The notes under the pieces were generated by a model, which was not told the DNA's origin, ran no database searches, and worked only from the letters and a program-made list of their open reading frames with translations. A stretch of DNA of 64,000 bases from Calcarisporiella thermophila CBS 279.70 (lineage: Eukaryota > Fungi > Calcarisporiellomycota): positions 29,206 through 93,205 of the forward strand of contig NW_027192212.1 of NCBI RefSeq assembly GCF_041956535.1, read 5' to 3'. Below are positions 19,916 to 59,294 of this stretch, one piece after another (the stretch's first letter is position 1; each line of letters opens with the position of its first letter). The translations under genes were made by a program, and so were the position numbers.

Positions 19916-20254
19916 TTACGAGATGTTCTTGTATTTTACACTATGAAATTTACTAGGAGTCTCGAGTCTGGCTACGGAACCAACATAGGGTTGTTGATTT
20001 CCATGATAGTAATAGTTGTCAAAAATGGTGACACTGAGCCATTCAGGGGCTTTGAAAGAACCAACTACTGGCATATTGCCACGGGGAGAACCAGCACTCG
20101 AACCTTTCTCGAGGGAAGCGCAGATAAAGCTGCATTCTTCTTTGAAGTTTGGTTTTTTATAATAGTATACGCAAAAATCGCCTTTGTCATCGGCAGTGAC
20201 TAAAGCAACGACGCTCAAATCGCCAAGGAGCAGACCCAAGCCATAGATCTTCAT
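19916..20254 (-). CDS. Small secreted beta/gamma-crystallin-like protein (112 aa)
   Basis: First in-frame ATG at 20254, signal peptide; Greek-key-like motifs YYKKPNFK and VTIFDNYYYHG with downstream GSFK and HSVK serines. Confidence 0.75.
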   Translation of the reverse strand: MKIYGLGLLLGDLSVVALVTADDKGDFCVYYYKKPNFKEECSFICASLEKGSSAGSPRGNMPVVGSFKAPEWLSVTIFDNYYYHGNQQPYVGSVARLETPSKFHSVKYKNIS

Positions 20255-20770
20255 TTTGTTGGAAAATTTTTGGTATCTTGAATATTGGCTTATATGATGG
20301 ATTACGAGATGCTTAAATCGCAAATGGTGCTAGAGAGAATAACAAATCGACCTAAATTTATAGGTAAAAAATATGAGAGTTACCAAAAATTTTTCCGACT
20401 AATTTATTAATAGAATGGCAAAGCCTCAGTCATTAATAATCCCGTTCCTGAATAGAATAATTGAAAAATGCTCAAAGTTTAGGTTGGGCGATGGGGTGGA
20501 ATCACTCTTACAAGGTTATTTTTGGAAATTTTACTGACTTACCAACCCATTTTTTAACATTAACTTGGATGGCCAAAATATATTTCAAATCGTTGCCTCC
20601 ATTTCTTACTACGCTCATTATTGTTAAAGTAATGGCGATGAAAGTGTTGAATATAAAAATAATAGTTTAGCAAAAGATTTCTGATAGGCACTATAAAAAT
20701 AATTTGGAATATCACAAGCTAGTAGTTTAACATTTCGATCGAAGGAACTTTGGACTAATCCTCCAGTGAC

Positions 20771-21097
20771 TCAACAAGCAAAAGAAATACTGTTAGCCTC
20801 TGCTCTGACATCCCTAACACAACCTCCGTAACCATCATCCTCATGGAAAACGGTTCCTCCGCAATCACGCCCTTTGTAGATTGTAATTCCCGGATTGTTG
20901 GGCAGGTAATAACTATAGATAAGAGGTTGTGCAGGAATATTCCAGCATCGCGTCTGACAAGGTCCTGGCGAATCAATCGCAGGTTGACCTTGGCAACGGC
21001 TGTTTGTATACCCTTGGACCACGCCTGCAAAGGCTGATCCCATGCAAAAGGAGAATACTCCTAATATGACGGCAAATAGAGACTGCTTCATGGCCAT
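20771..21097 (-). CDS. Small secreted Cys-rich protein, beta/gamma-crystallin or killer-toxin-like (108 aa)
   Basis: Signal peptide; twin YxxxxCxG motifs (YTNSRCQG, YKGRDCGG) followed by YSY and NSISF. Confidence 0.78.
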   Translation of the reverse strand: MAMKQSLFAVILGVFSFCMGSAFAGVVQGYTNSRCQGQPAIDSPGPCQTRCWNIPAQPLIYSYYLPNNPGITIYKGRDCGGTVFHEDDGYGGCVRDVRAEANSISFAC

Positions 21098-22592
21098 GTC
21101 GTATTAGGCAAACAATTTAGAGGTGAGATGATATTGCTGATAAAAAAGGTCCCATTTGGGTTAAGGTGTATTTATACATATTTCAGAAAAGGTGCCATTA
21201 TCATGGCTGGGCGATTAAGTCTACTAATTTGGTATAAAAATAATTGTAGATTAAGCTCAGCGTTTATTGATTTGGGTGAGTTGCAAACCTTTTTTTGTAT
21301 CAGGAATATCTTGTATTACAGCTATTTTGAGCGAAGCTAGAAAATTGTTTGGATATATTGTATAATAGAATATTTAGTGACTCATATTAAAAGAGATTAC
21401 ATAAGGGTATAGATGGGATTTTAAATATCATGTCTAATACTGGCTCATTTTGTACTTATCATTAATGGTGTTCTTACGAGCACATACATGACTTTTGATT
21501 ACACTACATCTCTCAAAGAATTGCCTTATTCAAAGATGGTGTCCACAAAGTATACAAAATAGCGATATCCAAGTAATTAAATAGTAAATTGCGTTTTATT
21601 TCGATAAACTTCAATGGATTATGTGCAAATAAATTTAGTTGTAAAAAGATTATAAGAAGCCTTTTAATTTAACTTCGTTTTTACACAAATGTGAATATTT
21701 ATAATATGGGCCCAGGCAACCTCATTCTTGTGATTGCCTTTTGCGTTTAATCTGCATTTAGCAAAAATTTTTTGGAATCACTGTTTAAAGCATATTTAAT
21801 TTGCAGTTACACGCTTTCAATATTTTTAATAGTAATTTAGCAGATTCAAAAAAGGTTGTCAGTGTGTCTTAACTGTGAAATCCTCTTGTTTTCTTCTATC
21901 CATTTTTCTTTAAGGTAAGAGTAAATCAACAAGGAATTAGATCGTTATCAGTCTTGCGATACATTTTATCTTATTTTCAAACCTAACTATCATTTTTCGA
22001 CAGCCCCATCTAACATAATGTTTTTGATGCATTGTTATTTTTCCTCCAAGGTAATTCTTTGGAACCATTTATTGCATCGATATTATCCTAAGTTGTAAAG
22101 GATTTTTTGAGAACCAAATAGCTAATATACTTTGGCACTTCACAACAATTTTATATCACTCCTCTTCCCGCACATCTTTTCTTGCATATAATCGAAATGT
22201 AGCTTCTATTGTATTCAATATAAATATATGTTACTCTTGGGTGAACTTGAACTTTTATTAGTATCTCACTTTATAGCTATATCGACTTTTTATGGTTAGT
22301 TTAGCAAAATATTCATATAATATGTATACATATTGACAAGATTTTTGCCCACTATTTCACAGTATTACCTAAGATAAATTCAGGCTCCACCTGAAAAATA
22401 TTTAAATGAATATTCGATTTTTTTATTCCTTCTTTAAAGTTTACGGTTTAGTTCAAGAACTTCAAAGGATTCGACCAATTAATTGGGAGGCTTAATGATT
22501 ATTATATACAGAATTAAAGGGACTGAATCAGATCTAAAATTTGGCTTAGATCCAGGAAAGAAATTGCTACTTAGGATAGATTGAGATAGGAG

Positions 22593-22633
22593 GGATGACA
22601 TCCTCATATATATTATATATGAGGATGTCATCC
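22593..22633. repeat. Perfect nested palindrome (20-bp arms, 1-nt centre)
   Basis: ggatgacatcctcatatata-t-tatatatgaggatgtcatcc; each end (ggatg-a-catcc) is itself palindromic. Confidence 0.92.
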
Positions 22634-22721
22634 AGCAGTCACGTAATTTATAAAAATTTTATAAAACTATCAAATGAAAAAGCGATTTGTTAAATTTTGC
22701 TAGTAACAGATCATCTTATTC

Positions 22722-22906
22722 TGTTGGAGGACGACCAGGCATGACTGATAATCTGAAATTGTCAGTATTTAATTTAAACCTGATTTTTCTTGTTTGTGTA
22801 TAAACTATATTACCTGTTTATGATTTCTTGTTATTCTTAAATAGTTCAGCTATTTGCCGTTCTTTTTTTAATGGTGATTAATATACTCTGATTAAAAATT
22901 CCAACA
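22722..22906 (-). mobile_element. Diverged solo LTR of the copia family
   Basis: tgttggaggacgaccaggcatga...ttaatatactct...tccaaca termini shared with 14933-15179; TSD poor. Confidence 0.75.
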
Positions 22907-22925
22907 TATAGTAAATAATTATATT

Positions 22926-23182
22926 CCCTATAGAAAGTCATATAGAGAAAATATAGGGGAATAATGTGGGAAATATAGGGAACACCTCACTTTCCGTATG
23001 ATTTTCTGATATTTCCTATAATTTTTAATGGTTTTTATATGGATTTTTATATGGGTAAGGATTTGGAATTTATAGTAAAATTAGAGAAAATTATAAGGAA
23101 ATTATAGGAAAAGTGAGGCGTTCCACATGTATTCCGCATATATATTATTTCCCTAGGTTTTCCCTATGCCCCTTCTTATTGG
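22926..23182. mobile_element. Fold-back or MITE-like element with long degenerate inverted arms
   Basis: Left ccctatagaaa...ggaacacctcactttcc against right ggaaaagtgaggcgttcc...ttcttattggg. Confidence 0.6.
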
Positions 23183-23400
23183 GACCGTACCCTTCTACGA
23201 GGTTGGAGTATACTACAAGATCGATATCAAATATATTATAATTTAAACCAATATCATGATCAACTAACAAATGTAATACTCTTTCTATAAAAATAGTTAT
23301 ACTCTTTCTAATAGCTAAATATATTGAATGTAGTAATAAGCACTTGGAAAATTCACGAATTTGAAAATCTCGATCTAAATTGTGGGGAGAATTTCTTTGA

Positions 23401-24870
23401 TTATGAACAAGTTCTCATTCGCGATATAAGCTTGCCAAGTTCGCGATAGGCTTCGCCCTCCGGAGTCCATGCCATCTTCAGCTCTGCGCTAATATTTTTA
23501 GCCGCAATTGTATAAGGATTTTCATTATTCACGCTTACTGCATAGTATTTTTCCACTGTAGAGGTTATACGTTCAGCAGAAATTAAATCTGGATTTGAAG
23601 CATATTCATGGGATGTTTGAGCGGGGTTGAGGTCGAAAGCAATCCCTGTTCCAAGTCTAACCAACAAGTTTGATACGCCAGGTTGATCCCCAAAGACTGG
23701 CCAGTGGATAGTACCAACCCCACAAATCAGACTTTCAAGCGCAGAATTCCATCCGCAATGAGTCAGAAAGGCCGAGCAGCTTGGATGAGATAATACAGCC
23801 TTCTGGGGTGCCCACTCCACTACGGTAACGTTGTTGTATACAAGCACTCCATTCATTGGAGAGATCATTTCTGTGGTAGGCAATGCTTTTTGCTGAGTAT
23901 CACTCAGGCCCCAAAGTACATTCCTGCCTGTGGCATCGAGTCCCTTAAGAAGCTCAATAATTTGGATATCGCTATGACACACCACGGTTCCAAAGGAGAC
24001 ATAGAGCACTGATTGTTTGGGCTTCTCATCAAGATATCGCGCAACCCAGGATCCAAGATTTCTCTGCTGATTGTTTGAGCTTGCTTGGTCGAGCTTATGC
24101 TCCACTCGTCTTTCACTTTGATTATGACCCAGGCTTCCTTCATTTCCATCGTCTATATCAACAGAGTAGAGCGGTCCTATACAATATACTGGCGTGTTTG
24201 GAGTGGGGGGATTCAGATAATTGTTCTCTATGCAATTAGCAAAGTTCCATATCAGGCCATGAGATTTGGCTGCTCGCGAACACAGCCTTTTTTGTCCGTT
24301 CCTCAGTAATTCTCCGATCGAAGTTTCAATAGCACTGTTATCTGTCCTTCGTATTTTCGATTCCGTTGATGAGAAGGGGATATCAACTGGAGTGGTGCCG
24401 AAAAAGTAGTAGGGAGTAGAATCAAACGGAAATGGCTCAAACATCCCACTGAACATGTCAAGAATAATGCAGGATGGTGGAAAGGTGCTTTTTTTCGCCG
24501 ATTCTAAGTACTCTCCAATAGCTTTGATATGCTTCGGCAGAGTGCCGAAAAAATTTTTACTCTCCTGACTTGATGTCGAGTCAAGTGGATTCGCACCATC
24601 CTCAATAGGTTCAATGCGTACACTACCATAATGTCCTTGATAAATTTCAGAATGGTTCTCGTTAGTTGGAATGACCCTCCTCCACTTCAAACGCCGCACA
24701 AATGCTTTTGAGATAAGGAGGGTTACAAGTCTTTCAGATTCGTTCTTAGCATCTTTTATCTCCGGATAAGAAGGAGTGCTAACAATCCTCTTAGCAAGAG
24801 AGACAGCGGGAATGACATGCCCAAACGCCGGTGGTATAGAAATCAGGATATGTGCAACGGGTGAGACCAT
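23401..24870 (-). CDS. UDP-glycosyltransferase (GT1)
   Basis: Catalytic His motif GHVIP, DMF, LYVSFGT, full PSPG-type box WAPQKAVLSHPSCSAFLTHCGWNSALE...WPVFGDQ; intronless 489 aa. Confidence 0.95.
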   Translation of the reverse strand: MVSPVAHILISIPPAFGHVIPAVSLAKRIVSTPSYPEIKDAKNESERLVTLLISKAFVRRLKWRRVIPTNENHSEIYQGHYGSVRIEPIEDGANPLDSTSSQESKNFFGTLPKHIKAIGEYLESAKKSTFPPSCIILDMFSGMFEPFPFDSTPYYFFGTTPVDIPFSSTESKIRRTDNSAIETSIGELLRNGQKRLCSRAAKSHGLIWNFANCIENNYLNPPTPNTPVYCIGPLYSVDIDDGNEGSLGHNQSERRVEHKLDQASSNNQQRNLGSWVARYLDEKPKQSVLYVSFGTVVCHSDIQIIELLKGLDATGRNVLWGLSDTQQKALPTTEMISPMNGVLVYNNVTVVEWAPQKAVLSHPSCSAFLTHCGWNSALESLICGVGTIHWPVFGDQPGVSNLLVRLGTGIAFDLNPAQTSHEYASNPDLISAERITSTVEKYYAVSVNNENPYTIAAKNISAELKMAWTPEGEAYRELGKLISRMRTCS

Positions 24871-26356
24871 GTTCGTTCAGAATATACGAAATGATTAACA
24901 GTTGAAATACGAAAATATCCAGTTCAAAAATTGGAGCAAAGGAATTTTCAGACTCTATATATTTGATAGTTGGAATCATATTCAATACTGACTCAAGCTC
25001 TTCTATCGCAATTGAAAGCATAAACATGAGTTTACCCTCGGGAGAAAATATCCCTTGTTGCACTACAATATATGAAACAGGATAATTGAAATAATCTTGT
25101 CTTAATTTTCGCTAAATCTATCGATAAAATATGAAGAGTTGATTTGCATTTTGGCTTATGACAAGCACAGATAAAATTATTTTGTGTAAACACATAGCTT
25201 AAGATACAGGATTCTAACGTCTGGGTCGGAATTTCTAAAAACTGTCGCTCACCCTATTACTATTTGAGTTTCTAGTTTGAGTTCAAGACTCTTAGATTAC
25301 TTTTAGGATACTGACAACCGCTAATACAAATGGAGACGAAATTGACACCTATGTTTTATCAGCTCCATTTTAATTCTAATTAACTTACATGAGTTAATAA
25401 AAATAAATATAAATTCGTGGGGATCTATTACAATGTGGAGTGGTTCTATGCTTTATGCCAATTTGTCTGCTCTCTTGGCAACAAATGCTTGAAACAATAG
25501 GGGTTCTTAGACCTGAGTTCACAACCTATTGGGAAAGCGTATTAAACCTTAAGCCGATTTCTGAGACTTATGTCTCAATCAAATTATTCTGACGTGCTTG
25601 TCAAGTATACTATTTTGGTATGTTTCACATTTTTCATGAGTTAGGCGTACCAGGAAACGGTAGATACAAATGCAATATCTTTGATATAATAATCCTTAAC
25701 ATTAAAAAAAAACATTATCCCAGCAATATAGACGAGAATTAGAACATGTCAATTCTGTAGTTCTTTTTCACTATATATACTCTTTGATCCTATCAAAAAT
25801 CGCGGAAAAACACTATCAACATTGACTGGCGTTAAATGTAGTCTCATATTAAACGTATTGACAACACTCTCTAGAGGCAATAGCGTAGTACCGTGCGCTG
25901 AATTTATATAAGCCGAAATCAAGCTTAGACATTAATTCTTGAAACCGGCTTTTGCATGCCTTGTTTAACATTTTCTATCCAAATTTTTATAGAAAGGGTT
26001 TGATTTCTAATTGTAGTTCAAAATTCAATTTTCTTGGCCAACAGAATCCTCTGGAAAAGGCTTATAGCTGTCGAATCCTGTGATAAGATCCATGGAGTGA
26101 CTTGACTACTTAATTTTCATTAGGTGACCAATAGCCGTAACTGTGTAAATTAGAAATTATTATTTTCTACCAAAGAAACAAGGAATATCCGATGAAAGTT
26201 ATATATTCTTTCATAGCGAAGCGGCCCATTCTACCAAAACCAATCGAAATGATCGAACCCGATATTTGATCGTATATTGTTGCCTTAATAATCGCATTTA
26301 ATGCCTATGCCTCTGCATATCCTCACTTATTCTGCTTCATTTGGCTTTACTTAAGG

Positions 26357-26392
26357 TAAACTAATATAAATTGCTATATTTATATTAGTTTA
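26357..26392. repeat. Hairpin (15-bp perfect arms, 6-nt loop)
   Basis: taaactaatataaat-tgctat-atttatattagttta. Confidence 0.7.
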
Positions 26393-27538
26393 TCTGATGT
26401 AAAAGGGTTCAAGTACTGTGGGTTATCCAGCTCCATTGCTAGGGACGAAATATTTCAACCAATTATCTTTGGCCAAGGCTCCACAGTTGCAGACTTTGGG
26501 GTCATTGGAATTGTGCATGCACTAAATTTCATCCAGATGATCAGTGTGAATTTTTGCTATCCGTTATGTCCAAAATTGCATATCTTGAACTTAACCCTTG
26601 ATGCTTATCCAAAGTCCACTGTCCTACCTGTGGGTACTTTTGAGAGCAGAAAGTCATCAATGATCACCTTGTTCAAATAATCCTACAATCTAATCTCGGC
26701 GAGAATGATGCGGTGTATGATTGATGCGAACAATTACATCAAATACCTCTGACAACGGAAGTATTTTGACCGACAAGAGCAGAGGTTATTCAATACGACA
26801 TCCCACAGAACGCTTCCTACTATCTTATTAATACGGAATGAAAACATATTTCAATTAAGGAGCAGTAAGAGAGAATCGGAGAAGCAATGCAACGTGTCTA
26901 CTGTTCATAACTTCATAAAACTGCCTCTCAAGTATAAATGTAAATGAGCGGGACCAGCTTTGCATTTCCCAGGGATCACAAACAACGAGCTATTTTTTGC
27001 TCGAATCATCCTTCTCTGTTCCAAGATTCTCCAGATTGAAAAAGAAATATCAGGTTTAGACATCACAGGCGATGGAATTGCGCAACAAAGGTCGGATCGC
27101 ACAATTCTAGGCTGCATCAAAATTGCAATTGTGCATCATTTAAGCACCATTCGCCGGTAAAATCGTAATGATAGTAACTTATTATGACAAGCATATTATT
27201 GGGGTTGATAAATAAACTAGGGGGAGGGGGTATACGCGGCAGTGATTCAGGCACATATGCCCAAAAGTAGTGTTAGAAAAGGATGAGCATTGAAACTTAG
27301 ACTGGCTGCGCCTCTTTATGACGTCATCAAATCGATTCGATTATTAAGACAATTTAAATGAAAGAAGCCAAAATGTGAGATAATAAGGGAGACGGTTGAA
27401 AATTGAAAAAAATAGGTAGATGAGAATCCATCGACTCGTTTGACAATTGGACTCACCATGCCTGGTCCGAATGAACTGAAGAAATGAGAAATAAGAAATT
27501 AACTGTCTTACAGATTTTTGCAAACCGCTGGGAGCTGA

Positions 27539-28057
27539 ACCGGAAAGGTAGTTAAAATATTACCAAATTTATATTTACAACAATCCACCTCCTTTGCCAT
27601 CAAAAAAAGAGCCAAATGTCGTGCTCATACCATTTCTGTACCCGTCAGCAATCTAGAACTATGCTATCCAGAGCTACCACCAATACATACTATATCACAT
27701 CTTCCATCAAGTATTTTTGTTCCAACGTCATCTCCTCCTGATAAAAATGATATATCTACAGTATCTTCGACCTCTGATGCTTCAGAAGAGAACAAGTTGC
27801 AGCAAAACGCTAGAGCCATTGAAGAAATGCGATCTTTCATCTGTCCTTTTCCCCATTGTCAACGCTTGTTCAAGCGCGTGCAGCACTTAAACCGTCATGT
27901 ACGAAGCTCGCACACCAATACCTGCCCTTTTAAATGCACTCATTGTGAAAAACCATTTTCGAAAACTGGTAGTCTACAAGTACATATGCGCATGCATGAA
28001 CGACAAGTGAGGGTCAGAAACGGCAACTTCAGCTACTACATCTGTGTCAACAGATAG
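27539..28057 (+). CDS. C2H2 zinc-finger transcription factor (two fingers); start not resolved
   Basis: CPFPHCQRLFKRVQHLNRHVRSSH-TNTCPFKCTHCEKPFSKTGSLQVHMRMH; frame open from 27539 with an S/P-rich segment but no early ATG, so an upstream exon or pseudogenisation is implied. Confidence 0.75.
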   Translation, partial: TGKVVKILPNLYLQQSTSFAIKKRAKCRAHTISVPVSNLELCYPELPPIHTISHLPSSIFVPTSSPPDKNDISTVSSTSDASEENKLQQNARAIEEMRSFICPFPHCQRLFKRVQHLNRHVRSSHTNTCPFKCTHCEKPFSKTGSLQVHMRMHERQVRVRNGNFSYYICVNR

Positions 28058-28626
28058 AAGAAACTTCCCTTAAAAAACGTTGATTGTTACATGGGCCATC
28101 TATGATTAAAGAAAAATTCAAATCGATTAGCAATGGACCGTCTTTGATGCATTTTCAGCGAATATAAGACGTATTTTTAGCCGCTAATCATAATTGCTGG
28201 CACATTAGTGGGCCAACAGTTTGCGTGTTTAGTATTGAATATTATAAGACTCAAAACAGAAAAAATTTGTTTGATTACTTTCAGCTCAACTGCATGAGAG
28301 TTATGCTCTAAGTAAATCATTTTCTATATTTCAGCCAAAATGACAACCACTATGATCGAGAAGAAAGAATAAAATAAAGAAAACAAATTTGACGATAACA
28401 ATATTCATTTTCTTAGGTATTTTGAAAATTTTCAATATTACAAAATAATACAGTATAAAACATCCGTGTTCAAAAAAATGATCATAGCGCTACCTTACCT
28501 CGACGCCTCACTTGAACTTATTTATTGCATCAAGGATAGAGGATGGAAATGTAAACCGCTAATTTTGCAACGCTACTTTCGCTAAAGCTGAATCGCACGT
28601 TAGACCTAGGCAAGAGTAAGCACAGT

Positions 28627-33875: not shown

Positions 33876-34045
33876 AAGCCACGTTGTCCGAGCGCGGGAA
33901 AATGCGACTGGGTGTAGATTCGACGAAAATATCAAAACACGAAGCCTTCGCGTTAGATTGTCTCGATCAAATTAGGGCGACGCCACAGCGAAATCCTGCA
34001 GATAGCCACTGATTGTTTGTCACGCAGGTTGCATAGCTTGAGGGA

Positions 34046-46727: not shown

Positions 46728-46732
46728 CTAAT

Positions 46733-46816
46733 TGTTAAGGATAGTTTGAGAATGGTTAGGTTAAATAAAGCAAGCGGAGTTTTCTCTTACTCTCCTATCT
46801 CAAACTATCCATAACA
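46733..46816. repeat. 84-bp unit made of two inverted gypsy LTR 3' ends
   Basis: tgttaaggatagtttgaga...tctcaaactatccataaca; flanks ctaat/caaat. Confidence 0.65.
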
Positions 46817-47912: not shown

Positions 47913-48221
47913 ATGTTGAAATCTACAATTTTGCTCTGCGTCGCAACCTTATTTAGTGTAGCTGTCTGCGACCCATGCGTTCTTCGATTAGATTTTCCAT
48001 TTGAAAAACAGATATGTGAGCACAGCTCCATAGTTGGCGAAAAAAATTGTTTTGGCGTGCTCAAGAACTGCTTAGGATATGATTTCTATTCATTCCAAAG
48101 ACATGACTGGAACTCAACCAACGAATATGACTATCGTGCGCTGGTAGGACTTGGTGACTCGGCAACTTATAAATGTCTGACCAGAGTTGGATTTAAGTGC
48201 AAGGAAGACAGACCTGAGTAG
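47913..48221 (+). CDS. Small secreted Cys-rich protein (102 aa)
   Basis: ATG at 47913, signal peptide MLKSTILLCVATLFSVAVC, six mature Cys. Confidence 0.75.
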   Translation: MLKSTILLCVATLFSVAVCDPCVLRLDFPFEKQICEHSSIVGEKNCFGVLKNCLGYDFYSFQRHDWNSTNEYDYRALVGLGDSATYKCLTRVGFKCKEDRPE

Positions 48222-48372
48222 AAATGAATAAGATTGAATCATGCCGGATTATTTATTAATACTATTCCATTATTCTCAATAAAGATATTTATATTAATAT
48301 TATTTGATGTTAATTCACAAGGCATCATTGCGTTCGTTAATGATATCTAGGATACAGTAAATAGTCTATTAT

Positions 48373-51097
48373 TGTTGGATTTTTAAAAAGATTATATTGA
48401 CAAAAAGGAAAGAAAAACAGACAGAAGGGATAACACGAATAACACACACCAAAGGAATTCAAAAGGGAGAAAGCACATCCTATATATATGATAGAATAGG
48501 AGATGATGACTAAANNNNNNNNNNNNNNNNNNNNTGCGAACATTATTAGAGCAATCGCAAGTCCCCAAAGAATTATGGACCGAAGCTGTGCGAACAGCTA
48601 CACTGGTGAAAAATATGTGGCCGTCAAAGCCAATCAATGGGAAATCGCCATATCAACTATGGTACAACAAGAATCCGGATATGGCGCAATTGCGTACCTT
48701 TGGTTGTCGAGCGTATGCGCATATTCCGAAGACCCAACGATCCAAGTTGGATCGCCGTGCGGAAGCTGGAGTCATGGTGGGATACAGTTATCAGTCTAAG
48801 GCTTGGCGGATATTTATACCCGAGTCAAGACGTATAATAGAATCGCGAGATGTACGATTTATTGAGAATGGGTTCCCATATCAATCCCAGCAGAATAAAC
48901 CTCAACCCGATCTGGTGACATTATCTCTGAGCTGTGAGAGCTCTAAGGATGTATCGGGGATAGAGGGGGACGAACAAACCAAAACCGCCCGAAGCCGAAG
49001 ATAAGGGGAAAACGAGTCAACAGGAAGAATCAGCTGAGAATAACTTGCAACTGCGACGATCCACGCGACAACGCAAGACGCCCCAGAACTTGGGACAATT
49101 TACAACTGATGCTTCCGATGAATCTCGTACAATACGAGAAGCACTGCAACGCAGTGATGCCGACCAGTGGCGCAAGGCAGCAGAGCATGAATTACAGTCA
49201 CTCCGCGAACATGATGCGTGGGATCTGGTGCCGCTTCCACCTGGCAAGAAAGCAATTGGATCACGATGGGAGCTGAAAATAAAACGCAATGTGGATGGTA
49301 CTGTCGAGCGTTATCGTGCACGGTTTGTTGCGCAGGCTTCTCTCAAGAAGCAGATATCGACTACCACAGCACCTATGCTTCAGTCGCTCAATATAGTTCT
49401 GTGCATATCATACTAGCAGTAGCGGCCGCGAATAGTTGGCCAATTCATCAAGTCGACGTTTCCACTGCGTATTTAAACGGAACTGTAAAGGAAGAACTAT
49501 ACATACGTCAACCACCCGAATTTGAACAAGGAGATCTCGTATGTCGACTGAAACGAAGCTTATACGGATTGAAGCAAGCGGCGCACGAATGGCAACGAGA
49601 AATAAAACAACGACTGATTTCGATTGGGCTAAACCCGACGAGGGCCGACGAGGGCATTTATGTATTAAAAGAGGGACATGATGTCGTGATTGTTACGCTC
49701 TATGTAGATGACCTTATCATTACAGCAAACACGGAGAAACTTATTGCATGGTTCAAGGGCGAGCTCGAGAAGGCATACAAAATTCGCGATCTGGGTGAAG
49801 TTTCGTTATATTTGGGATTAAATGTGACTTACGATAGCAAAGAGAAATTGCTCCAAATCTCCCAAAGCCATTTCGCACAAGAGATCCTCGAGCGCTACCG
49901 TATGAACTTGGCCAAACCTGCGACAACACCCATGGAACTTAACCAGCAAATCACACCCGCAACGGATGACGATATCATTAATAATGTTCCCTACAGATCT
50001 GCGATCGGCGCCGTGCAATACCTGGCTAACATGACAAGGCCTGATTTATCATATGCGGCAAACCGACTTTCGAGTTTCAACGAGAAACATAACAATGAAC
50101 GTTGGCTTATGGTGAAGAGAATATTGCGGTACATTAAGGGGACAAAAGACCTCAAGCTAACATTCCAGGGAGATTCACTGCGTCTTGTGGGCTATGCGGA
50201 TGCAGATTTTGCAAGCGACAAATACAATAGACGTTCAACGTCAGGGTATGTTTTTAAGCTTGCAGGTGATGNNNNNNNNNNNNNNNNNNNNNNNNNNNNN
50301 NNNNNNNNNNNNNNNNNNNNNNNNNNNNNNNNNNNNNNNNNNNNNNNNNNNNNNNNNNNNNNNNNNNNNNNNNNNNNNNNNNNNNNNNNNNNNNNNNNNN
50401 NNNNNNNNNNNNNNNNNNNNNNNNNNNNNNNNNNNNNNNNNNNNNNNNNNNNNNNNNNNNNNNNNNNNNNNNNNNNNNNNNNNNNNNNNNNNNNNNNNNN
50501 NNNNNNNNNNNNNNNNNNNNNNNNNNNNNNNNNNNNNNNNNNNNNNNNNNNNNNNNNNNNNNNNNNNNNNNNNNNNNNNNNNNNNNNNNNNNNNNNNNNN
50601 NNNNNNNNNNNNNNNNNNNNNNNNNNNNNNNNNNNNNNNNNNNNNNNNNNNNNNNNNNNNNNNNNNNNNNNNNNNNNNNNNNNNNNNNNNNNNNNNNNNN
50701 NNNNNNNNNNNNNNNNNNNNNNNNNNNNNNNNNNNNNNNNNNNNNNNNNNNNNNNNNNNNNNNNNNNNNNNNNNNNNNNNNNNNNNNNNNNNNNNNNNNN
50801 NNNNNNNNNNNNNNNNNNNNNNNNNNNNNNNNNNNNNNNNNNNNNNNNNNNNNNNNNNNNNNNNNNNNNNNNNNNNNNNNNNNNNNNNNNNNNNNNNNNN
50901 NNNNNNNNNNNNNNNNNNNNNNNNNNNNNNNNNNNNNNNNNNNNNNNNNNNNNNNNNNNNNNNNNNNNNNNNNNNNNNNNNNNNNNNNNNNNNNNNNNNN
51001 NNNNNNNNNNNNNNNNNNNNNNNNNNNNNNNNNNNNNNNNNNNNNNNNNNNNNNNNNNNNNNNNNNNNNNNNGATCATGCCTGGTCATTCTCCAACA
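48373..51097 (+). mobile_element. Ty1/copia retrotransposon, both ends present, with assembly gaps
   Basis: TGTTGGA...TCCAACA with perfect TSD ATTAT; integrase tail (LRTFGC..SKLD..ESRDVRF) before RT (DVSTAYLNG, SLYGLKQA, LYVDDL) and RNase H (YADADFA...RSTSG); frameshift near 49335. Confidence 0.95.
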
Positions 51098-51542
51098 ATT
51101 ATGTTGCGCATTCTTCAAAAAGTTGTGACATTTCCTGAGATCAATCAAAAGTCTTGGATATTATCTGGGTAACCCTGGCAATGTAATTCTTTACTATGTG
51201 TATTTTAATCGAGTTTCTACTGTGATAAAAAATTTACCTCATTTCAAAAAGTAAAATGAACTATGATGAGAATGATGGTTAAGAAAAGTCAACTAACCAC
51301 TTGAAAACTTTGTGAACCTATCAAGATAACAAGCCTTAGGTTCAAATTAACCGGCTTTTATTTCATATTCTCATAATAACCAACTAACCTAATGAATTCC
51401 CCGTTAATGGTCCTTACAGATAAACCTGCCCTCGTACGGAGTTCAAAGTATAACTTATAGGTGCTTTCATATTAATTTCATTCACATCGGAGAGAAAAGT
51501 CTTATCGTAATTATTTAGGTTACAGATCTCGTACACAAAAAT

Positions 51543-52589
51543 ATGGCGTATATTAAGAGATTTGCTTCATCTTTGAGAGGACTCGTTCATAATCAAAATA
51601 GCTCCACAAATGATCCTTCTCGAATGATTTCTCCGGCTTCATTTCCAAATCGTTCAACGTCAAATGAACGAATCAGAATACATGCTTGGGTATATTACGG
51701 TGCTCCTGCTCTTACCGCTTCCGCAGATTACAAAGCTAATAAGATCGATGTCCTTCGAGTGCAATATTTTAAACTACTTGACGATGGAATTCTCGAAAGA
51801 ATAGATGAAGATTCAGATGATTTATACGCGACGCAGAATGGCTTTTCTGAGAGTAACATTCAGGACATAAGTGAGCATTCAGCTGAACAACTGGTTACTG
51901 TATCAGGTTCGATAGATAGTATGAGGTCACTCTTCGCTTGTGGCTCAAAAAAGTATAATGCAATTAATACGCTTGTAAAATTTGTCACAACTTACGAGCT
52001 TACGGGTATTGATATCGATTTCGAAACTTTTGGACGCTGGACTTTAGAGGACTATGATAATTACAAGGCTTTTGTCACTAGTCTGGGTATTAGGCTCAGA
52101 AATGCGAAAAAAAAGCTTGCAATATGCGGTCCTATGTGGACGTCAAAAGAATCCCCGTTGATATGGAATTACCCCGATTTCGTCAAGCTACCTGTTGATT
52201 ATATAACTCCTATGCTCTATGATTATCAATGTGACTATGGCGGTGGTTCACCCATCTGCCCTTTGTCATGGCTGAAAGAGTGGACATTAAATATGCTTGA
52301 GATATTCCCCGTAGAGCGACTCGTTATAGGACTACCTTCATATGGATACACGGCAACCCTGGACAAATATGACATTCAAAATCTCACATTAGAACAAATT
52401 AAAGAAGCTGGTGGGTATAATGGTGGGAAAAGAGATAAAGAATCTGCTGAGGTCATAAAAATCACAGCTAATGGCCAAGTATTCGTATCTAACGATAAGA
52501 TTTCGCTTAATACAAAATTACAGCTTGTACAAAGTCTAGGGATCAAACAAGTCTCTATATGGCACCTTGGAGGAAATGATTGGTTTTAG
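51543..52589 (+). CDS. GH18 glycoside hydrolase (chitinase-like), intronless, no signal peptide
   Basis: GIDIDFE catalytic DxDxE, PMLYD, IGLPSYGY, SIWHLG. Confidence 0.9.
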   Translation: MAYIKRFASSLRGLVHNQNSSTNDPSRMISPASFPNRSTSNERIRIHAWVYYGAPALTASADYKANKIDVLRVQYFKLLDDGILERIDEDSDDLYATQNGFSESNIQDISEHSAEQLVTVSGSIDSMRSLFACGSKKYNAINTLVKFVTTYELTGIDIDFETFGRWTLEDYDNYKAFVTSLGIRLRNAKKKLAICGPMWTSKESPLIWNYPDFVKLPVDYITPMLYDYQCDYGGGSPICPLSWLKEWTLNMLEIFPVERLVIGLPSYGYTATLDKYDIQNLTLEQIKEAGGYNGGKRDKESAEVIKITANGQVFVSNDKISLNTKLQLVQSLGIKQVSIWHLGGNDWF

Positions 52590-53026
52590 TTATACATAAA
52601 TACATAAATACATAATGATATATAAAATTTATATGTTACCAAGATTCCTCTGGTAGGATAACAACTCAATTTGGATGTAATTGCTTAACTTCATAAAAAC
52701 ATGGGAGATCCATAGGATAATACTTGTGAATCTTTTGAAGATAAAAGAGTTAGAGACTTTTAACCATATCAAATATTACATTGTTTTCCGTGAAAAAAAA
52801 AAAGATATCAATGGCCTATTGATCTCAAGCACTGCAATAAGTATTTTAGCCATTGTTTTTTATATATAATGCACATTTTAATTTCATTTGACATTTCGGA
52901 TACCGAAAACTTAGACTGCCATAATAATCCTTGAGTAGATATATTTAAATTAGAATCAAAGGAAAATACAGACTAAGGTGTGGGTGTGAATAAATTTACA
53001 AAATATATTAATATTAAATTAAATGA

Positions 53027-54281
53027 TTAATGGATTTTAATATCTATTCTCAATGGCCTGTTCAAAGTAACGTTAAGATTAAACTGATCAATGAACTTGA
53101 ATAATTTGTTTTCTTGTTCTCTGACTTGTGTAATATTGCCTCCCATCATCAAGATCCAAGAATCAGGTTGCCTTTTAAGCTTTGGAATAATAGCGGGCTT
53201 TGGGCGTGGTGGTTTCGATTTATTCTGTGTCGCACCTTCGTCATCGATAATACTCTGAGAGGTCATAGTGGTTTCAGGATAGTCTTGGTAAACATAACAC
53301 AGATTGTCGCTAGTTGTAGGCATAACCGAAGCGACTTGAATATTGAATGGCTTTAGATAGTCAGATATATACACACGACTCCCATCCTTATTTGTTCCTC
53401 CATACTGGTACACATAGAGAGGATCACGTTTTTGCCAGTCTGCCCAGATTTTATCGATATATGCGTGATGCATATAGAAAATTGGACTGCAAGAAAGCAA
53501 ATATTAATTTAGATCAATCTCAAAAATACTACAAGTTGATAATACACCTACTCATTAGGGCCTGCCATTGTAGCCATATCACCGCCAACTCCATTATGAA
53601 TCCCAGCGTGGGGGTTGCCTTCAATTGCCGGATGAAAATCCTGATACCTGTTATTGCTATAGACGATATGTTGGATGGTGGTAGGGTCCGCAACATATCC
53701 TTTCAAGTTTTCAAGGGAGCGCTGGAGACAGTGCGGAGATGTCTGATCGTAGTCCTTATAGGTGACTTGCCAATTGGCAAATGGGCCAGTACTAACACAA
53801 CTACCACTACCGCCGCACCAGTCGTTTGAGAATACAGGACTTGAAATGGGATTAAGATAGTCTTCACTCCAATTCTGTATCGATAATTCGTTATTGTTCG
53901 TACTTAAACAATTAATCTAGAATATCTACTTACCCAATATGGTATCACAACATTAGGGTTTATACTCTGCAACGCTTTTTCATATTCACGGAGGTAAGCG
54001 CGATGCCATGGGAGAAACTGGGGTTGATAATGAGCATATGCCGTAGCTTCCTGGTGCCATTTAGTCAGTAAATCATAACGACTTGGTCTGACGCCTTGAT
54101 TAAGTTGTTTCACCGCATTGATGAAATCAATACGCTCTTGTGTTGTGAATTGACGGATCTCTTTGCGTACAGCAATAGTGGCACAACTACCTTCAGCATA
54201 AGGAACGGAGGAGAGTAACGGGATAAATGCAAAGATATAAAAAATAAAGAGGTTTCGGGAGAAAATAGCTCCGAGCTTCAT
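53027..54281 (-). CDS. Secreted tyrosinase (type-3 copper protein)
   Basis: Signal peptide, VRKEIR, CuA H...AH..FLPWHR, CuB PHAGIH...NDPIFYMHHAYID; introns 53933-53875 and about 53552-53488. Confidence 0.95.
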
Positions 54282-56972
54282 TCTATTAGCAGGATGTAGT
54301 GAGAGGAATGGGAGAGTGATAAGGTTGTTTTTTTATTGATATATCTTTGGGATTTATTCCCTGAGCTCTAAAGCGAAATGTTATACATTATATACTCTAG
54401 CGTTGATTTGGCAAATGAAACCGGGTGAATTGGCCAGGTACAACTGCCATTTATTATTATATAGCTAATTTTCGTGGGAAGCCCAGAATTAGGCTAATTA
54501 AAACTGAATCGTTACCAGTAAATCGAATTTTGAATTTGGTTCATATGGAACACCACTGCTAAGGTAACATGGTCTAAGCAAGAGAATTCGCCATAGGAAA
54601 CCTAACGGGTAAGAAAATCACTATAATTATATTTTTATGTCCGCTGGCAGCATTCTACGTTAACCTGCCTTTTTGAAATATGAAAACTGATATATTCTAA
54701 TGATTGCGAGAAACCCAACCAGATTGTGAATCTGCAAATGTGGAGAAATCATGGAGGCGTAGCTAACGATATTAATCTTCTATGCTAGTAATAATTTAAT
54801 TTTAAAATGTTGTATACGGACTATTAAATTGCAAAAAAAAAAATACTTGTAGTTTAATATCTAGATTTTTTTTATTATTAGAGTCAGTGGATGGTTTCTC
54901 TAAGTTAGGTCAATATTCCGTCTCCTGGTGTATTAATAATATATTCTGATTACAAACATTTAATTACCTGGGAATATCCTAGATATCAATTTATGCATTA
55001 AGGCACCATTAATTTTAAAAATTCCCTTTGTTTAGGAAATGCCTCAAACTTAACCATTTGCCAAAATAGCTCAAAATAGATATCTTTCCGCTCACAAAAT
55101 ACCTTGGCACGAGGAGTTTACCTGGTTCGAAATGAGTTGCATGATGATTCCTGGGTTAATGATATTGGCTTTATTAACGAGAAATATTCGGCTGGCAAAA
55201 TGATAAAGATTTATATAAATTTTAGAATCATTTTAGAAGATATTATAACTTTACAACTTTCTTTTAGATGAAATATTATATATAGCTTGTTTTTATTTCT
55301 ACGACAATATCCTGGGTTAAATTGGTGAAAAAGAAAGTAACAGTTGAAATGACCTTGGTGTTATTGAAAATATTAGGCAAAGAGCACCTTAATAAAAGGT
55401 CAACGTTAGCCAATTCATTAGTAATGCAAGCCTACGTATCCCAGGTTTTACACAAAGAAATGTTAGAGCAGGATATCCTAGTGTGATTTGACAACATTGA
55501 CAATCAACTCCCTGGTTCCCTTTCCGAGGAATCACATTAGAACCGATACCTTTATATAGTCTTATTTTGTTATCCCAGGCTAAAAACGTTTTTATTTTCT
55601 ATTTACTCTGTAATTATTTTATTTTTTAATAAAACGGCCTCATCATCATGAAATAAGGACCACTGATTGAATATCTCATTTATTCTAAGCTGCATAACCA
55701 GTGGTGGTGAGTGTCCTTAAGGCTTTTTAGTGGGCTAAGATGAGGGGATATTCGAAGTAGATACTGTGCGCGAGTCATACAATAAGATAATGCTGAACAT
55801 CGATACGGTATTTACTTGAGCATATATTGTCTTAATTGAATTACTTTAGCTCGCATATATACAATGGCCCTGTACTTGGTCTGCCGTGCAATCTCAGTGG
55901 AATTCCGAGACGAGGGCGGCAATGAGGAAAGCTTGAGGATGGAGATAGTTCCATCTTCAGTATCGACTATGAATGAATAACTAAGAGAGCGTCGCGTGAT
56001 AAGACAACTGTGGACAATGTAGATACACGAACAATGCGAAGATTGACACGCACGTGTGGATATGAAGAGGTTAGCGCTGGAGATGTCGATATGATATCCG
56101 AAGAGAACGCGACAGAGCCTGCGGAAGGACGGTCGGTCGAGGAGGAACGTCCTCCAGGTCGCTCGCTGCAGCGAACTGGACGCTAGTATACTACACAATG
56201 TGTAAATAGGGATTATTACCCTACCTAATAGCATGCAATGAGATGGCTCCTTTTTTGTTTAGCTGCCTAACATATTGACGACTATACCACGTGAAGTAAA
56301 CATCCCATTGCGATATTGACTAATGATAGGCGGGGGTAAACGTGTTTTCTCAGCGTCACCTTTCTAACATCTACATAATGGCACTTGTGCGACGCGACAA
56401 GCAGGGAAAATGTGTAGCTGATGATGTTCGTGTACCATGACGTCTTCTGAAGAGTATGCCAAACCGTCGTCGTAAGCAAAGTCAACCGATAGTCGCCAAG
56501 AGTGTCAGCGCTACACAAGCAATTGCTTCAGCGCAAGTGGGTGTACAAATGCCGCACACTCATGTGTCACAGTCATACACAATCAAGGTGCCATTCAACT
56601 ATTGTAGAAGCGTTGTTGCGATTGGTTATAAAATCATCAGCTTTGCTAGACAAATGAAGCTCATGCTGAGACGCAGCTTTGTATTACAGCCAAGTCCGAT
56701 GAAAGAGGTGTCCGTGGACGTTTCACGGCGACATGGTAAAATTCATTTTTTCTATGAATTCTTACTGTGGCAATCCGAGCGACCATTGAGATTTTCTGGA
56801 ATATTGGAAGCTTTGCCGCAGCATCGGCGGTTGTACCGTATCATTCACTAAATGGGTTTGCACTCAGCTGACATTCTGAGAGAAGTATAAATGGGCTTGA
56901 AAATTCCCTGGTAAGTCGAAAATCATCAGTAAAGTTAATTTCTGCACTAATCAACACCTTTCTGACATTAAT

Positions 56973-57398
56973 ATGACGGCCGACTTCGATTCTACTCCAA
57001 AAATCGTTTTTGGCATATTTGGAGCTTTCTTCGGTATTATACTCCTTTCGATACTTGTCAGCTCTTGTCGATCAAAATCTCAGATCGTGACTAAGCCACA
57101 CGCTCCAGTAATAGTACGAGTGGGTTCTGTATACCATATTACTATCCCTGAGTCCGCACATACCTCTCACGACTCGCATCACAATACCGTTTGGTGTACC
57201 AGTCCTACGCCCGCGGCAGATTGCTATGGCACATCGATACATGATCACTACACCCCATCCAATGATACATGTGTGTCGATTTCCTATGATACATCGACAA
57301 CCACTTACTGCGATAACTCTACGCCATCGTCCAACGATACGCCATCTCCATCTTCCAGTGATACGTCGCCTCCTTCGTCCAGTGACACTTCGTACTAA
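56973..57398 (+). CDS. Small single-pass membrane protein with S/T/P/D-rich repetitive tail
   Basis: N-terminal TM segment IVFGIFGAFFGIILLSILV; tail repeats DTPSPSSS and DTSPPSSS; TATA-like gtataaa about 85 bp upstream. Confidence 0.6.
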   Translation: MTADFDSTPKIVFGIFGAFFGIILLSILVSSCRSKSQIVTKPHAPVIVRVGSVYHITIPESAHTSHDSHHNTVWCTSPTPAADCYGTSIHDHYTPSNDTCVSISYDTSTTTYCDNSTPSSNDTPSPSSSDTSPPSSSDTSY

Positions 57399-58488
57399 GT
57401 TTCGAATGATTAGCATGCCGCTTCCAAGCTCCCTTAGACATGAACTAGATTGCCGTAGTCATTCCATACCCAAATTTGAAGTTTTCTTGTGTAATTATGT
57501 TGTAGATAAACGCGATAGTTGTATTGCGATACTTTTTCCTTGCTTGGATGTAGTATGGAATGTTTCCTGATTCTAATTTGTGAATATCTGTTGTGTATAA
57601 CAATAATGCTAAATTTCATAAAGTGTCCATACTCCACTCTCTTCCATTTCAATTGGGAACGAATTCACATCATTATTGAGCTCTTCTAATTCAATTCGAT
57701 ATTCCTATGATCTATCCGACTGATATGATCCTATGTAGCAATAATAAATTATATTACAGCATTTTCCAAACACATTATACTTTCCAACCTAGTAAAATAT
57801 TCACTTTTACAATGAAGCAATATGCTATGGCATAAAGGGAAAGGCAACTAGGCAGGCGATGTCATGACGTTAATTTCGTCAAGATGTTACTAACCAAAAA
57901 TTAACCAACGATAGTGATACTAAATTAATTTGTATAGCATTATTGTAAGGTTTGATTTTTTTTTACATTTACAGTTTGATTTCAGGTCCTTACTTTTCTT
58001 TTTGTATGTTATTTTTATTATATTATTATAGGTAAGGATCAGATATAAATCATTTTTCTTTAGCAAATATTTACTAATAAACATTCCTATTTTTTTTGTT
58101 ATTTTTATTATTATTTCTATTACATAATTAAAAGTGTCAAAAAGTAGAAATTTCCTTTGTAACAGACTGAGCACAAAGCCTGGCAATTCAGCCGTGGGAA
58201 AGAGCGGAAAAGAACTAGGGAAATTTCCCATAATTGGAATGCACTAATAATACAATCCTAGCATGCGTGATTAACAGTAAAATAAAGTCAAGTTGTTCAA
58301 AAGACAGGCTTGGGAAGATTAAACCTCAAATAGATTAACATGTTACATGTGCAAAATCTCCCAAATTCATTGGATTCTAGCATCGTTCTGCACGGGAAAT
58401 GTGTACTAGGCGACGGTTTACAATTCACTAAGTTTTCCGTTATTCACGGATAGATTAAATATCTATTCTTGTTTTTCTGGGTCATTAA

Positions 58489-58760
58489 TGTTGTATTTTT
58501 AATAAGATTATATTGACAAAAGGAAAGAAGACAGATAGAAGGGATAATACAAATAACACACACCAAGGAACTCAAGATAGAAAGCACATACTATATATAT
58601 ATATCTGATTGGTTAGGGTAGGAGATAAAAAGGGATAAAGATGGTGAGACGCATGCTCGTACATGTAAGGCGCGTGCTTGTACAAGTGTGCTTTTAACTG
58701 ACATAGCACAAATATTATCTGGAATATATCAGACTACCAGTCACGCCTGGTCGTCCTCCA
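58489..58760 (+). mobile_element. Solo LTR of the copia family
   Basis: Matches the 48373 LTR (gattatattgacaaaaggaaag..., gcctggtcgtcctcca); perfect TSD ATTAA. Confidence 0.88.
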
Positions 58761-58979
58761 ATTAATCCAATTGTATCTATTGTGTAATTGTTTCTTTAAT
58801 AATTATTCTGATAGGTTTACACAACGTCCTTCATTTCAAATGGTAGAACCGTCCTTCGTCATTAATGCATCATCGACCCGTGCTTTCGAATATTTAAAGG
58901 TCGTTCTTTCTGCATTTGTCGTCCCATACTTGTCCTTTATTCGCTTCGTGAATTCTTACTTCATCAATTGCTTGAAACA

Positions 58980-59294
58980 ATGAAGGTTCTAATTCTTCTC
59001 GCTAGCGCCATTGCCGGCGCCATGGCCTCAACCCTTGAAATTTACAACAAGCCGAATTTCCAGGGTGGTTTACGCTTCACCCTACGATCGTGCAAGTGCG
59101 AAACGATTGACTCTGGCTACGTCGGCTCTTGGCGCGTGGGTGCCGGCGGACGAGGAGAGCGCTTCTGCTTCTGGAAAACGAATGACTGCCAGGCCCACGG
59201 TTTGCCTAAATGGTGCGCAACCCTTCCAGCTGGACGCGAAGACAAAAACCCTGGAGACAAGCACTGGAAATCCGTGTCCAAGGGTGGTTGCTAA
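58980..59294 (+). CDS. Small secreted beta/gamma-crystallin-like protein (104 aa, 6 Cys)
   Basis: ATG at 58980, signal peptide, LEIYNKPNFQG Greek-key motif, VGSW, FCFWKTNDC, WKSV. Confidence 0.82.
   Translation: MKVLILLASAIAGAMASTLEIYNKPNFQGGLRFTLRSCKCETIDSGYVGSWRVGAGGRGERFCFWKTNDCQAHGLPKWCATLPAGREDKNPGDKHWKSVSKGGC

Follow-up and report, generated by a model that had tools for sequence, protein, structure and literature searches.

Three open reading frames and their motifs

The window is a stretch of 64,000 nucleotides from Calcarisporiella thermophila CBS 279.70, a heat-loving, early-diverging soil fungus that lives as a saprotroph. It contains three intronless open reading frames, gene A (19916-20254, minus strand), gene B (20771-21097, minus strand) and gene C (58980-59294, plus strand), which are open without interruption from the first ATG and encode precursors of 112, 108 and 104 amino acids, respectively, just as originally predicted. 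Gene A lies 516 bp downstream of gene B on the same strand, in agreement with the tandem of about 500 bp spacing that had been described. The claimed signal peptides are matched by an N-terminal hydrophobic leader on each of the three products, with best 10-residue Kyte-Doolittle means of 2.1 for A, 2.7 for B and 2.9 for C; the leader of A is the weakest and includes an Asp. The G+C contents of the ORFs are 0.43, 0.47 and 0.55 for A, B and C, against 0.30–0.38 in the flanks (0.34 around A), each ORF thus being a G+C island, and in all three genes the coding frame has the highest codon score among the six frames. Two runs of N (48515-48534 and 50272-51072), about 27 kb from gene B and 8 kb from gene C, touch no ORF; since they sit between B and C, the distance and continuity between these two genes alone depend on them.

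Each protein carries two Greek-key motifs, Y-KKPN-F-KE and F-DNYY-Y-HG in A, Y-NKPN-F-QG and W-KTND-C-QA in C, and Y-TNSR-C-QG and Y-KGRD-C-GG in B, and reading of the sequences also bears out the Ser proposed downstream of each motif. Measured against the beta/gamma-crystallin motif Y/F/W-x4-Y/F-x-G, the second motif of A and the first motif of C are canonical, the first motif of A lacks the Gly, the second motif of C has Cys and Ala, and B has Cys in both. The motifs quoted in the original prediction are therefore present in all three proteins, except that the Gly is replaced by Glu in the first motif of A and by Ala in the second motif of C, and the series from aromatic/aromatic (A) through aromatic/Cys (C) to Cys/Cys (B) is real. 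The Ca-binding double clamp N/D-N/D-x-x-S/T-S is absent from the three proteins in a motif scan. Comparison of the three proteins in pairs by BLASTP gave nothing significant, in line with the little identity noted before, and direct searches of Pfam, NCBIfam and PDB sequences returned nothing useful, with no Pfam match for any of them, even at an E value of 10 for B and C. There is no PDB sequence match to the killer toxin WmKT (1WKT) or to SKLP either, and the likeness to these proteins is one of fold alone.

Genes B and C and the MiAMP1 family

MiAMP1, the antimicrobial peptide 1 of Macadamia integrifolia (PDB 1C01), is a cationic protein with a pI of about 10 and the disulfides C11-C65, C21-C76 and C23-C49. 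It belongs to the 'beta-barrelins' (PF09117), as does its pine homologue Sp-AMP3, and in this family a disulfide-forming Cys usually takes the place of the second aromatic residue in each Greek-key motif. Alignment to 1C01 places a Cys in both motifs of MiAMP1 itself, so that the replacement of the aromatic residue by disulfides is not the new trend that had been proposed.

The leader of B covers about residues 1-24, with a putative cleavage site, placed by eye, after SAFA, and leaves a mature domain of 84 amino acids with six Cys and a pI of 5.6. Nine full-length MiAMP1/beta-barrelin copies were found in the C. thermophila genome, and the word-index protein search recovered the genome's own copies only. 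Paralogues of B show 89, 78, 35 and 37% identity to it (E values of 5.9e-6 and 1.4e-3 against genome paralogues), and Ser62 and Ser103 of B are invariant across its seven paralogues. Against PF09117 the paralogues score 35.4, 35.3, 34.4 and 25.8–26.4 bits, and thus pass or touch the Pfam gathering cut-off of 26 bits. Moreover, a profile built from seven C. thermophila copies alone retrieved PDB 1C01 with an E value of 7.3e-5, and among 1.84 billion proteins it matched proteins of Linnemannia (1.2e-16), Mortierella (8.2e-13) and Lecanicillium, as well as a Streptomyces 'MiAMP1 family antimicrobial peptide' (1.3e-5); several of these matches from Mortierellomycota, Lecanicillium and Streptomyces exceed the PF09117 cut-off. 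Long bacterial proteins of 320–1959 amino acids that also matched the profile were set aside as repeats of repetitive surface proteins; three of them are cadherin-like/Big_9 proteins and two have type IX secretion sorting tails. When aligned to MiAMP1, B keeps all six cysteines, from which the disulfides C35-C93, C47-C108 and C51-C79 are predicted. By these profile searches and alignments, B is a divergent member of the MiAMP1/beta-barrelin family PF09117.

In gene C the leader covers about residues 1-16, and the mature domain of 88 amino acids has six Cys and a pI of 9.2. Its Greek-key motifs have the aromatic F27 in the first and C70 in the second. An HMM of 12 MiAMP1-family domains gave the mature domain 20.3 bits, and none of 5000 shuffles came within 10 bits of it; the hhalign probability is 88%, a profile homology weaker than that of B. 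The plant and Streptomyces proteins and a genome copy labelled C38 can be aligned with C over its WKSV...C tail. By alignment, C has four of the six MiAMP1 cysteines and two displaced ones (C63 and C79), and the core pairs C38-C104 and C40-C70 are predicted to be kept, with Phe at the position of the first-motif Cys. On this profile and alignment evidence C is a very divergent MiAMP1-like member of PF09117. Since neither B nor C reaches a Pfam model directly, the family membership of both is transitive.

The structural models point in the same direction. The AlphaFold2 model of B has a pLDDT of 84.2 and superimposes on 1C01 with a VIA Z of 8.5 and an rmsd of 2.5 over 75/76 residues. That of C (pLDDT 80.3) gives a Z of 8.1 and an rmsd of 2.4 over 76/76 residues; it was built from a MiAMP1-family alignment and is biased towards that fold, but the MSA-free ESM Atlas model agrees with it, and the closest structural neighbour of C in the ESM Atlas is the MiAMP1 cluster (TM 0.68). 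Both AlphaFold2 models are single eight-strand double Greek-key barrels. They were also compared with 48,161 PDB representatives in an unbiased search that did not use Foldseek, in which the top 25 matches of B and of C were all gamma-crystallin-like domains, the non-crystallin matches having Z of 5.8 or lower and falling to about 4 by rank 32. For B the highest Z, 8.9, belongs to a GH29 fucosidase from Fusarium (4ni3, C-terminal domain), and WmKT (6.0), AFP1 (4.5) and SKLP (1F53, 4.3) are among the lower matches; C matches gammaB-crystallin (9.1), WmKT (7.5) and AFP1 (4.9). The look-alikes that had been named are thus right, MiAMP1 and WmKT for both proteins and SKLP for B. The models of B and C bear out the gamma-crystallin-like double Greek-key fold; for A, for which the same fold had been proposed, the one model behind it is that of the ESM Atlas.

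A further family sequence lies 4 kb from gene C. In a whole-genome scan, positions 63158-63232 (minus strand), within a 42-amino-acid ORF (63119-63247), matched PF09117 positions 3-27 with 18.9 bits (E 0.04), which is the N-terminal third of the model only. The second half is absent from every frame within 500 bp downstream, and the fragment is probably a relic of a further copy of the family.

Gene A and the relation among the three proteins

The weak leader of A covers about residues 1-21 and is followed by a mature domain of 91 amino acids with three Cys and a pI of 8.4. Its ESM Atlas model has a pTM of 0.70, and all ten neighbours listed there carry Inhibitor_I36 and/or Crystall (TM 0.60–0.62), the alignments spanning residues 25 to 112 approximately. 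No relative of A was found by word search of 5.8 billion proteins or in a metagenome scan, no paralogue in the genome, and no match in Pfam, including PF03995 (I36), or among PDB sequences. The one PF03995 match of the genome, a protein labelled C7, is located away from A and has no similarity to it, and PF00030 has no match in the whole genome. We therefore regard A as a separate orphan, whose predicted fold, according to this model, is of the classical aromatic-corner beta/gamma-crystallin/I36 type.

With one language-model structure and no relatives, A could also be an open frame that arose next to B by chance and contains Greek-key-like motifs by coincidence. The failure to find paralogues, homologues or Pfam and PDB sequence matches, together with the weak, Asp-containing leader, fits such a reading, as do the positive codon test of the reverse strand and the fact that frames as long as A are no great rarity in 64 kb of DNA. 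We nevertheless think it unlikely that A is no gene, in view of the pTM, the ten out of ten neighbours with I36 or crystallin families, the first feature match of 0.95, which about one in 100 shuffled proteins reaches, the G+C content above that of the flanks, the best codon score of its frame, and the neighbouring position of B, another gene of the same fold.

The original prediction joined A, B and C into one rapidly diversifying, undescribed family of toxins or effectors, with disulfides taking the place of the aromatic Greek-key residue along the series. The real motif series, the same fold found or predicted in all three, the adjacency of A and B and the extreme sequence divergence would suit such a family. 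However, B and C fall within PF09117 by profile, MiAMP1 has Cys in both motifs, and the paralogue pairs have dN/dS values of 0.17–0.28, which indicate purifying selection and do not support rapid diversification. In the searches made, no sequence similarity connects A with B, C or any other protein, and the duplicated DNA common to the B locus and the paralogous loci ends before A. Furthermore, crystallin- or MiAMP1-like secreted fungal proteins have already been published (10.1101/127746; PMC9447291; PMC13525658). The 'undescribed' part of this proposal is largely refuted, and the proposal as a whole appears very unlikely to us. B and C thus represent additions to an established family, that of MiAMP1, and do not form a toxin family of a new sort.

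Function, evolution and comparison with known systems

Taken together, it is likely that A, B and C are genes for secreted gamma-crystallin-like proteins of about 9–10 kDa, with B and C as members of the MiAMP1 family and A as an orphan. We infer that the proteins are expressed, secreted, paired in their disulfides and active. The leader would be cleaved and the compact, disulfide-braced barrels would then act outside the cell, where competing fungi, oomycetes or Gram-positive bacteria may be the targets. By homology, they would probably bind beta-1,3-glucans of the cell wall, as pine Sp-AMP3 is reported to do (reviewed in 10.1101/127746; PMC7476358), and they would serve in competition among the microbes of soil or compost and not in the infection of plants. 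The acidic pI of B, as compared with the cationic MiAMP1, and the saprotrophic life of the fungus count against this explanation.

The same fold could also serve another job, and the proteins might be protease inhibitors, structural or stress proteins of the spore or cell wall, or carbohydrate-binding modules directed at the wall of the fungus itself. Proteins of this fold have diverse functions, the I36 member SMPI being a protease inhibitor and Protein S and spherulin 3a being structural or stress proteins; the nearest structural clusters of A are I36 inhibitor families, a true I36 protein is also present in the genome, the top structural match of B is a fucosidase domain, and B is acidic. 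Such a role seems improbable to us, because A, B and C all lack the Ca-binding motif that microbial structural crystallins have, and because B and C are related at the sequence level to MiAMP1-family proteins only, of which the tested members are antimicrobial (10.1101/127746; PMC7476358).

Under the explanation that we prefer there is no new kind of toxin, and the antimicrobial function of A, B and C is putative. Two unannotated or unnamed fungal genes are assigned to a family in whose plant members antimicrobial activity has been shown in tests. The plant-AMP reviews consulted treat this family as a class of plant AMPs, yet it has multiple copies in the early-diverging fungi Mucoromycota and Mortierellomycota and also occurs in Streptomyces. 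As the copies of this thermophile differ naturally in the disulfides kept, they would be convenient for studying barrel stability and for screens for heat-stable antifungal proteins. A bolder and rather doubtful reading is that the secreted proteins of the gamma-crystallin fold in C. thermophila are unusually numerous and diverse and keep, within a single genome, the intermediates, from the aromatic-corner beta/gamma-crystallin/I36 form (A) through forms converted by half (C, the C38 copy) to the fully disulfide-braced MiAMP1 form (B). If true, the 'plant' MiAMP1 family would share descent with the crystallin superfamily, and the patchy distribution among plants, Streptomyces and early fungi would point to an ancient origin in fungi or bacteria, or to horizontal spread. 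The family tree, with C and the C38 copy on long branches, is too poorly resolved to bear on origin or transfer.

Among known systems, the beta/gamma-crystallins (PF00030 and PF08964) and the I36 family (PF03995, SMPI) share the fold, and their signature Y/F-x4-Y/F-x-G ... S is canonical in the second motif of A and the first motif of C, whereas A, B and C have no Pfam match and no Ca-binding motif and are single domains without a partner domain. WmKT/HM-1 (1WKT), SKLP (1F53) and AFP1 (1GH5) are likewise microbial, single-domain, disulfide-rich, secreted and gamma-crystallin-like, but they have no sequence similarity found and other cysteine patterns, and SKLP matches B only. Ecp4, Ecp7, the C-terminal region of CfCE72 and CfCE44 of Cladosporium fulvum are, as here, small secreted fungal proteins with a predicted beta/gamma-crystallin fold, and the MiAMP1 Cys spacing has been reported for Ecp4 and Ecp7 (10.1101/127746; PMC9447291). 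Secretion and predicted fold are also shared with the gamma-crystallin-like effectors of Magnaporthe oryzae secretome cluster 14. Likened here by published descriptions, all these C. fulvum and M. oryzae proteins are induced in planta in plant-pathogenic Ascomycota, while A, B and C belong to a thermophilic saprotroph of the Mucoromycota. Compared with MiAMP1, B and C are fungal and not from plants, and both are under the Pfam cut-off; B is acidic and has CxxxC in place of CxC, and in C a Phe stands at the position of Cys11 and two of the cysteines have moved. B and C share with MiAMP1 a putative signal peptide followed by a single domain of about 76–88 amino acids, the eight-strand double Greek-key barrel, a Cys where the motifs would have their second aromatic residue and, in B, the alignment of all six cysteines.

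Three small open reading frames and their surroundings

The three frames are open at exactly the coordinates originally predicted, namely gene A (19916-20254, minus strand, 112 amino acids), gene B (20771-21097, minus strand, 108 amino acids) and gene C (58980-59294, plus strand, 104 amino acids), in a window (G000:C22:29206-93205) taken from an assembly of 28 Mb in 116 contigs, which the names given by NCBI to two paralogues assign to Calcarisporiella thermophila. A hydrophobic N-terminal leader is present in 3/3, and the leader and hairpin motifs quoted in the original prediction were both found in each of them. Genes A and B form the proposed tandem pair, gene A being located 516 bp downstream of gene B on the common strand. 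All three ORFs stand out from their flanks as G+C islands (0.43, 0.47 and 0.55 for genes A, B and C, respectively, versus 0.30-0.38), and in each the predicted frame gave the best codon score among the six frames compared. Two runs of N (48515-48534 and 50272-51072), both between genes B and C, are clear of the ORFs, so the uncertainty is confined to the distance from gene B to gene C. The low mutual identity was also confirmed, there being no significant pairwise similarity among the three. Searches of Pfam, NCBIfam and PDB sequences gave no match for any of them, and same-genome copies were the sole matches in a word-index search of 5.8 billion proteins. The window is transposon-rich, with a Tc1/mariner-type DDE_3 transposase ORF at 2588-3502 (plus strand), and further short cysteine-rich secreted ORFs, for example 47913-48221, are scattered among its transposons.

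Relationship of genes B and C to the MiAMP1 family

As judged by sequence comparison, gene B is a member of a family, namely MiAMP1, known as a plant antimicrobial peptide family (PF09117). When the six-frame translation of the genome was searched with gene B, four more intact genes were found, two near (89% and 78% identity) and two far (35% and 37%; E 5.9e-6 and 1.4e-3), and a profile search recruited two additional family copies on contig C3. In the Pfam scan of the gene B paralogues (PF09117 cut-off, 26 bits), the C3 pair scored 35.4 and 35.3 bits, the copy on contig C38 (G000:C38:15659-15886, minus strand; 97 amino acids) 34.4 bits, the C2 copy 25.8-26.4 bits and the second C8 copy 20.5 bits. 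The original prediction of an undescribed family does not hold for gene B, since its paralogues match PF09117 and the MiAMP1 structure 1C01 is matched (E 7.3e-5) by a profile built only from the seven C. thermophila copies. Searched against 1.84 billion representatives, the same profile had 23 matches with E values up to 0.001. Fungal proteins that are small and secreted are among them, from Linnemannia elongata (E 1.2e-16), from Mortierella sp. (8.2e-13) and from Lecanicillium saksenae, and so is a Streptomyces protein named 'MiAMP1 family antimicrobial peptide' by NCBI (E 1.3e-5; 79 bits to PF09117). Long bacterial proteins were also matched, which are repetitive surface proteins and were treated as spurious; gene B itself is absent as a protein among the matches of the protein-collection search. 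In the alignments, gene B has six of the six MiAMP1 cysteines, with CxxxC where MiAMP1 has CxC, and it scored 19.5 bits against an HMM of 12 family domains from which genes B and C had been left out. The disulfides predicted for it are C35-C93, C47-C108 and C51-C79. One C8 paralogue (G000:C8:1229217-1229546) is a genomic ORF of 109 amino acids that encodes a signal peptide; its NCBI model VTP21DRAFT_11343 (90 amino acids) begins at a Met within the ORF, leaving the signal peptide out, so a secretome prediction would miss it.

Gene C is placed in the MiAMP1 family too by its alignments, as a more remote member than gene B. Its mature domain scored 20.3 bits against an HMM of 12 family domains (signal peptides removed, gene C left out), and none of the 5000 shuffled controls exceeded 10.0 bits. 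Moreover, hhalign gave a probability of 88% over residues 8-71, and in a second alignment the C-terminal W-K-S-V...C of gene C lines up with the tail G-W-K-S-[IV]...C seen in the C38 and Streptomyces copies and also in 1C01. Gene C retains the equivalents of MiAMP1 C21, C23, C49 and C76, has Phe at the position of C11, and has two cysteines placed elsewhere. The disulfides predicted for it are C38-C104 and C40-C70, with C63-C79 as a possible third. The C11-C65 pair is also absent from the C38 copy, in which Trp replaces the first-motif Cys and the disulfide partner is gone, and from the Streptomyces MiAMP1 proteins. The series from aromatic to Cys residues, first taken as a new trend, is thus ordinary variation within the MiAMP1 family.

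Nor did the proposed rapid diversification find support: the dN/dS values (Nei-Gojobori, averaged over the whole gene) are 0.17 for gene B and the C8 copy, 0.28 for gene B and the C31 copy, 0.18 for the C8 and C31 copies and 0.18 for the C3 pair, showing no runaway sign in these averages. Gene B and its C8, C31 and C3 relatives are constrained genes.

Fragments were observed as well. In a 42-amino-acid ORF (63119-63247, minus strand), the match to the MiAMP1 model (18.9 bits) covers the N-terminal third of that model alone, and the second half was not found downstream. Immediately upstream, beyond an A-run and in a different frame, is an ORF of 79 amino acids (63244-63483, minus strand) whose leader resembles a signal peptide; it contains 10 Cys, nine of them after the leader, and had no Pfam match. 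On contig C23, a weak MiAMP1-like match (G000:C23:54028-54249, minus strand; E 0.01) contains an in-frame TAG and is probably a decayed copy.

Predicted folds and the position of gene A

The crystallin fold and the likeness to MiAMP1 and the killer toxin WmKT, as originally claimed, are upheld for genes B and C by model comparisons. The gene B model (21-sequence alignment; pLDDT 84.2, pTM 0.71) matched only beta/gamma-crystallin-type structures in the PDB with Foldseek. In an independent structure comparison scanning 48,161 PDB representatives, it came closest to a GH29 fucosidase of Fusarium, in the C-terminal domain (Z 8.9), with MiAMP1 at Z 8.5 (75 of 76 residues, rmsd 2.5) and lens crystallins at about 8. 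WmKT (Z 6.0), Streptomyces AFP1 (4.5) and SKLP (4.3) scored lower, in a scan in which entries 26-29 of the ranking, with Z about 5, are no longer crystallins by name, and evidently unrelated folds appear from about Z 4 downwards. The gene C model (pLDDT 80.3, pTM 0.69), possibly biased by its 13-sequence family alignment, matched gammaB-crystallin (Z 9.1), MiAMP1 (Z 8.1, all 76 residues aligned) and WmKT (Z 7.5); the separate, MSA-free ESM Atlas model of gene C (pTM 0.58) likewise has the MiAMP1 cluster as best neighbour (TM 0.68 both ways).

Gene A is probably a gene, and its product probably has a crystallin/I36-like fold, as suggested by its ESM Atlas model. It has a letter-for-letter entry in the ESM Atlas (pTM 0.70), where 10 of the 10 neighbours listed have Inhibitor_I36 and/or Crystall (TM 0.60-0.62, residues about 25-112), and among the feature hits are Crystall, Syncollin, Crystall_3, I36 and MiAMP1 clusters. 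It had no paralogue in the genome search, no homologue in the word search of 5.8 billion proteins or in the metagenome scan, no score against the MiAMP1 profiles and no similarity to the genome's single protein of the I36 peptidase inhibitor family (PF03995). DNA homology of the gene B locus to the paralogous loci stops 82 bp beyond the gene B stop codon, well before gene A. That gene A is a chance open frame seems unlikely to us, and we prefer to regard it as a gene. The sole PF03995 match (G000:C7:592295-592447, minus strand; 34.3 bits, above the Pfam cut-off) lies in a secreted protein of 104 amino acids.

Comparison with known crystallin-like proteins

A beta/gamma-crystallin fold was predicted for Ecp4, Ecp7, CfCE44 and CfCE72 of C. 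fulvum by Mesarich et al., with MiAMP1 and WmKT as templates and a Cys spacing in common with MiAMP1 (10.1101/127746). In addition, Seong and Krasileva described a gamma-crystallin-like effector cluster of 18 members in M. oryzae (PMC9447291), and one candidate of Rosellinia necatrix was listed as MiAMP1-like (PMC10796067). Such fungal proteins are therefore known, and we found no description in the literature of a multi-copy MiAMP1 family at the Pfam level in Mucoromycota and Mortierellomycota; thus, genes B and C extend an existing family. Its distribution is patchy (plants, Streptomyces, Mortierellomycota, Mucoromycota and a few Ascomycota), and the poorly resolved family tree is too weak to separate descent from transfer.

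By homology, we assume that the gene products would be secreted, disulfide-braced barrels acting on other microbes. Genes A, B and C all lack the Ca-binding motif known from structural crystallins of microbes. In the Fusarium GH29 alpha-L-fucosidases that gave the best structural match of gene B, the C-terminal domain (residues 501-585 of PDB 4ni3 and 9lxl) is a crystallin-like module on a glycosidase, which hints at carbohydrate binding by this fold in fungi. The pine MiAMP1 homologue Sp-AMP3 binds beta-1,3-glucan but not chitin (reviewed in 10.1101/127746). Gene C is basic (pI 9.2), like MiAMP1, whereas gene B is acidic (pI 5.6), so the family copies may differ in their targets.
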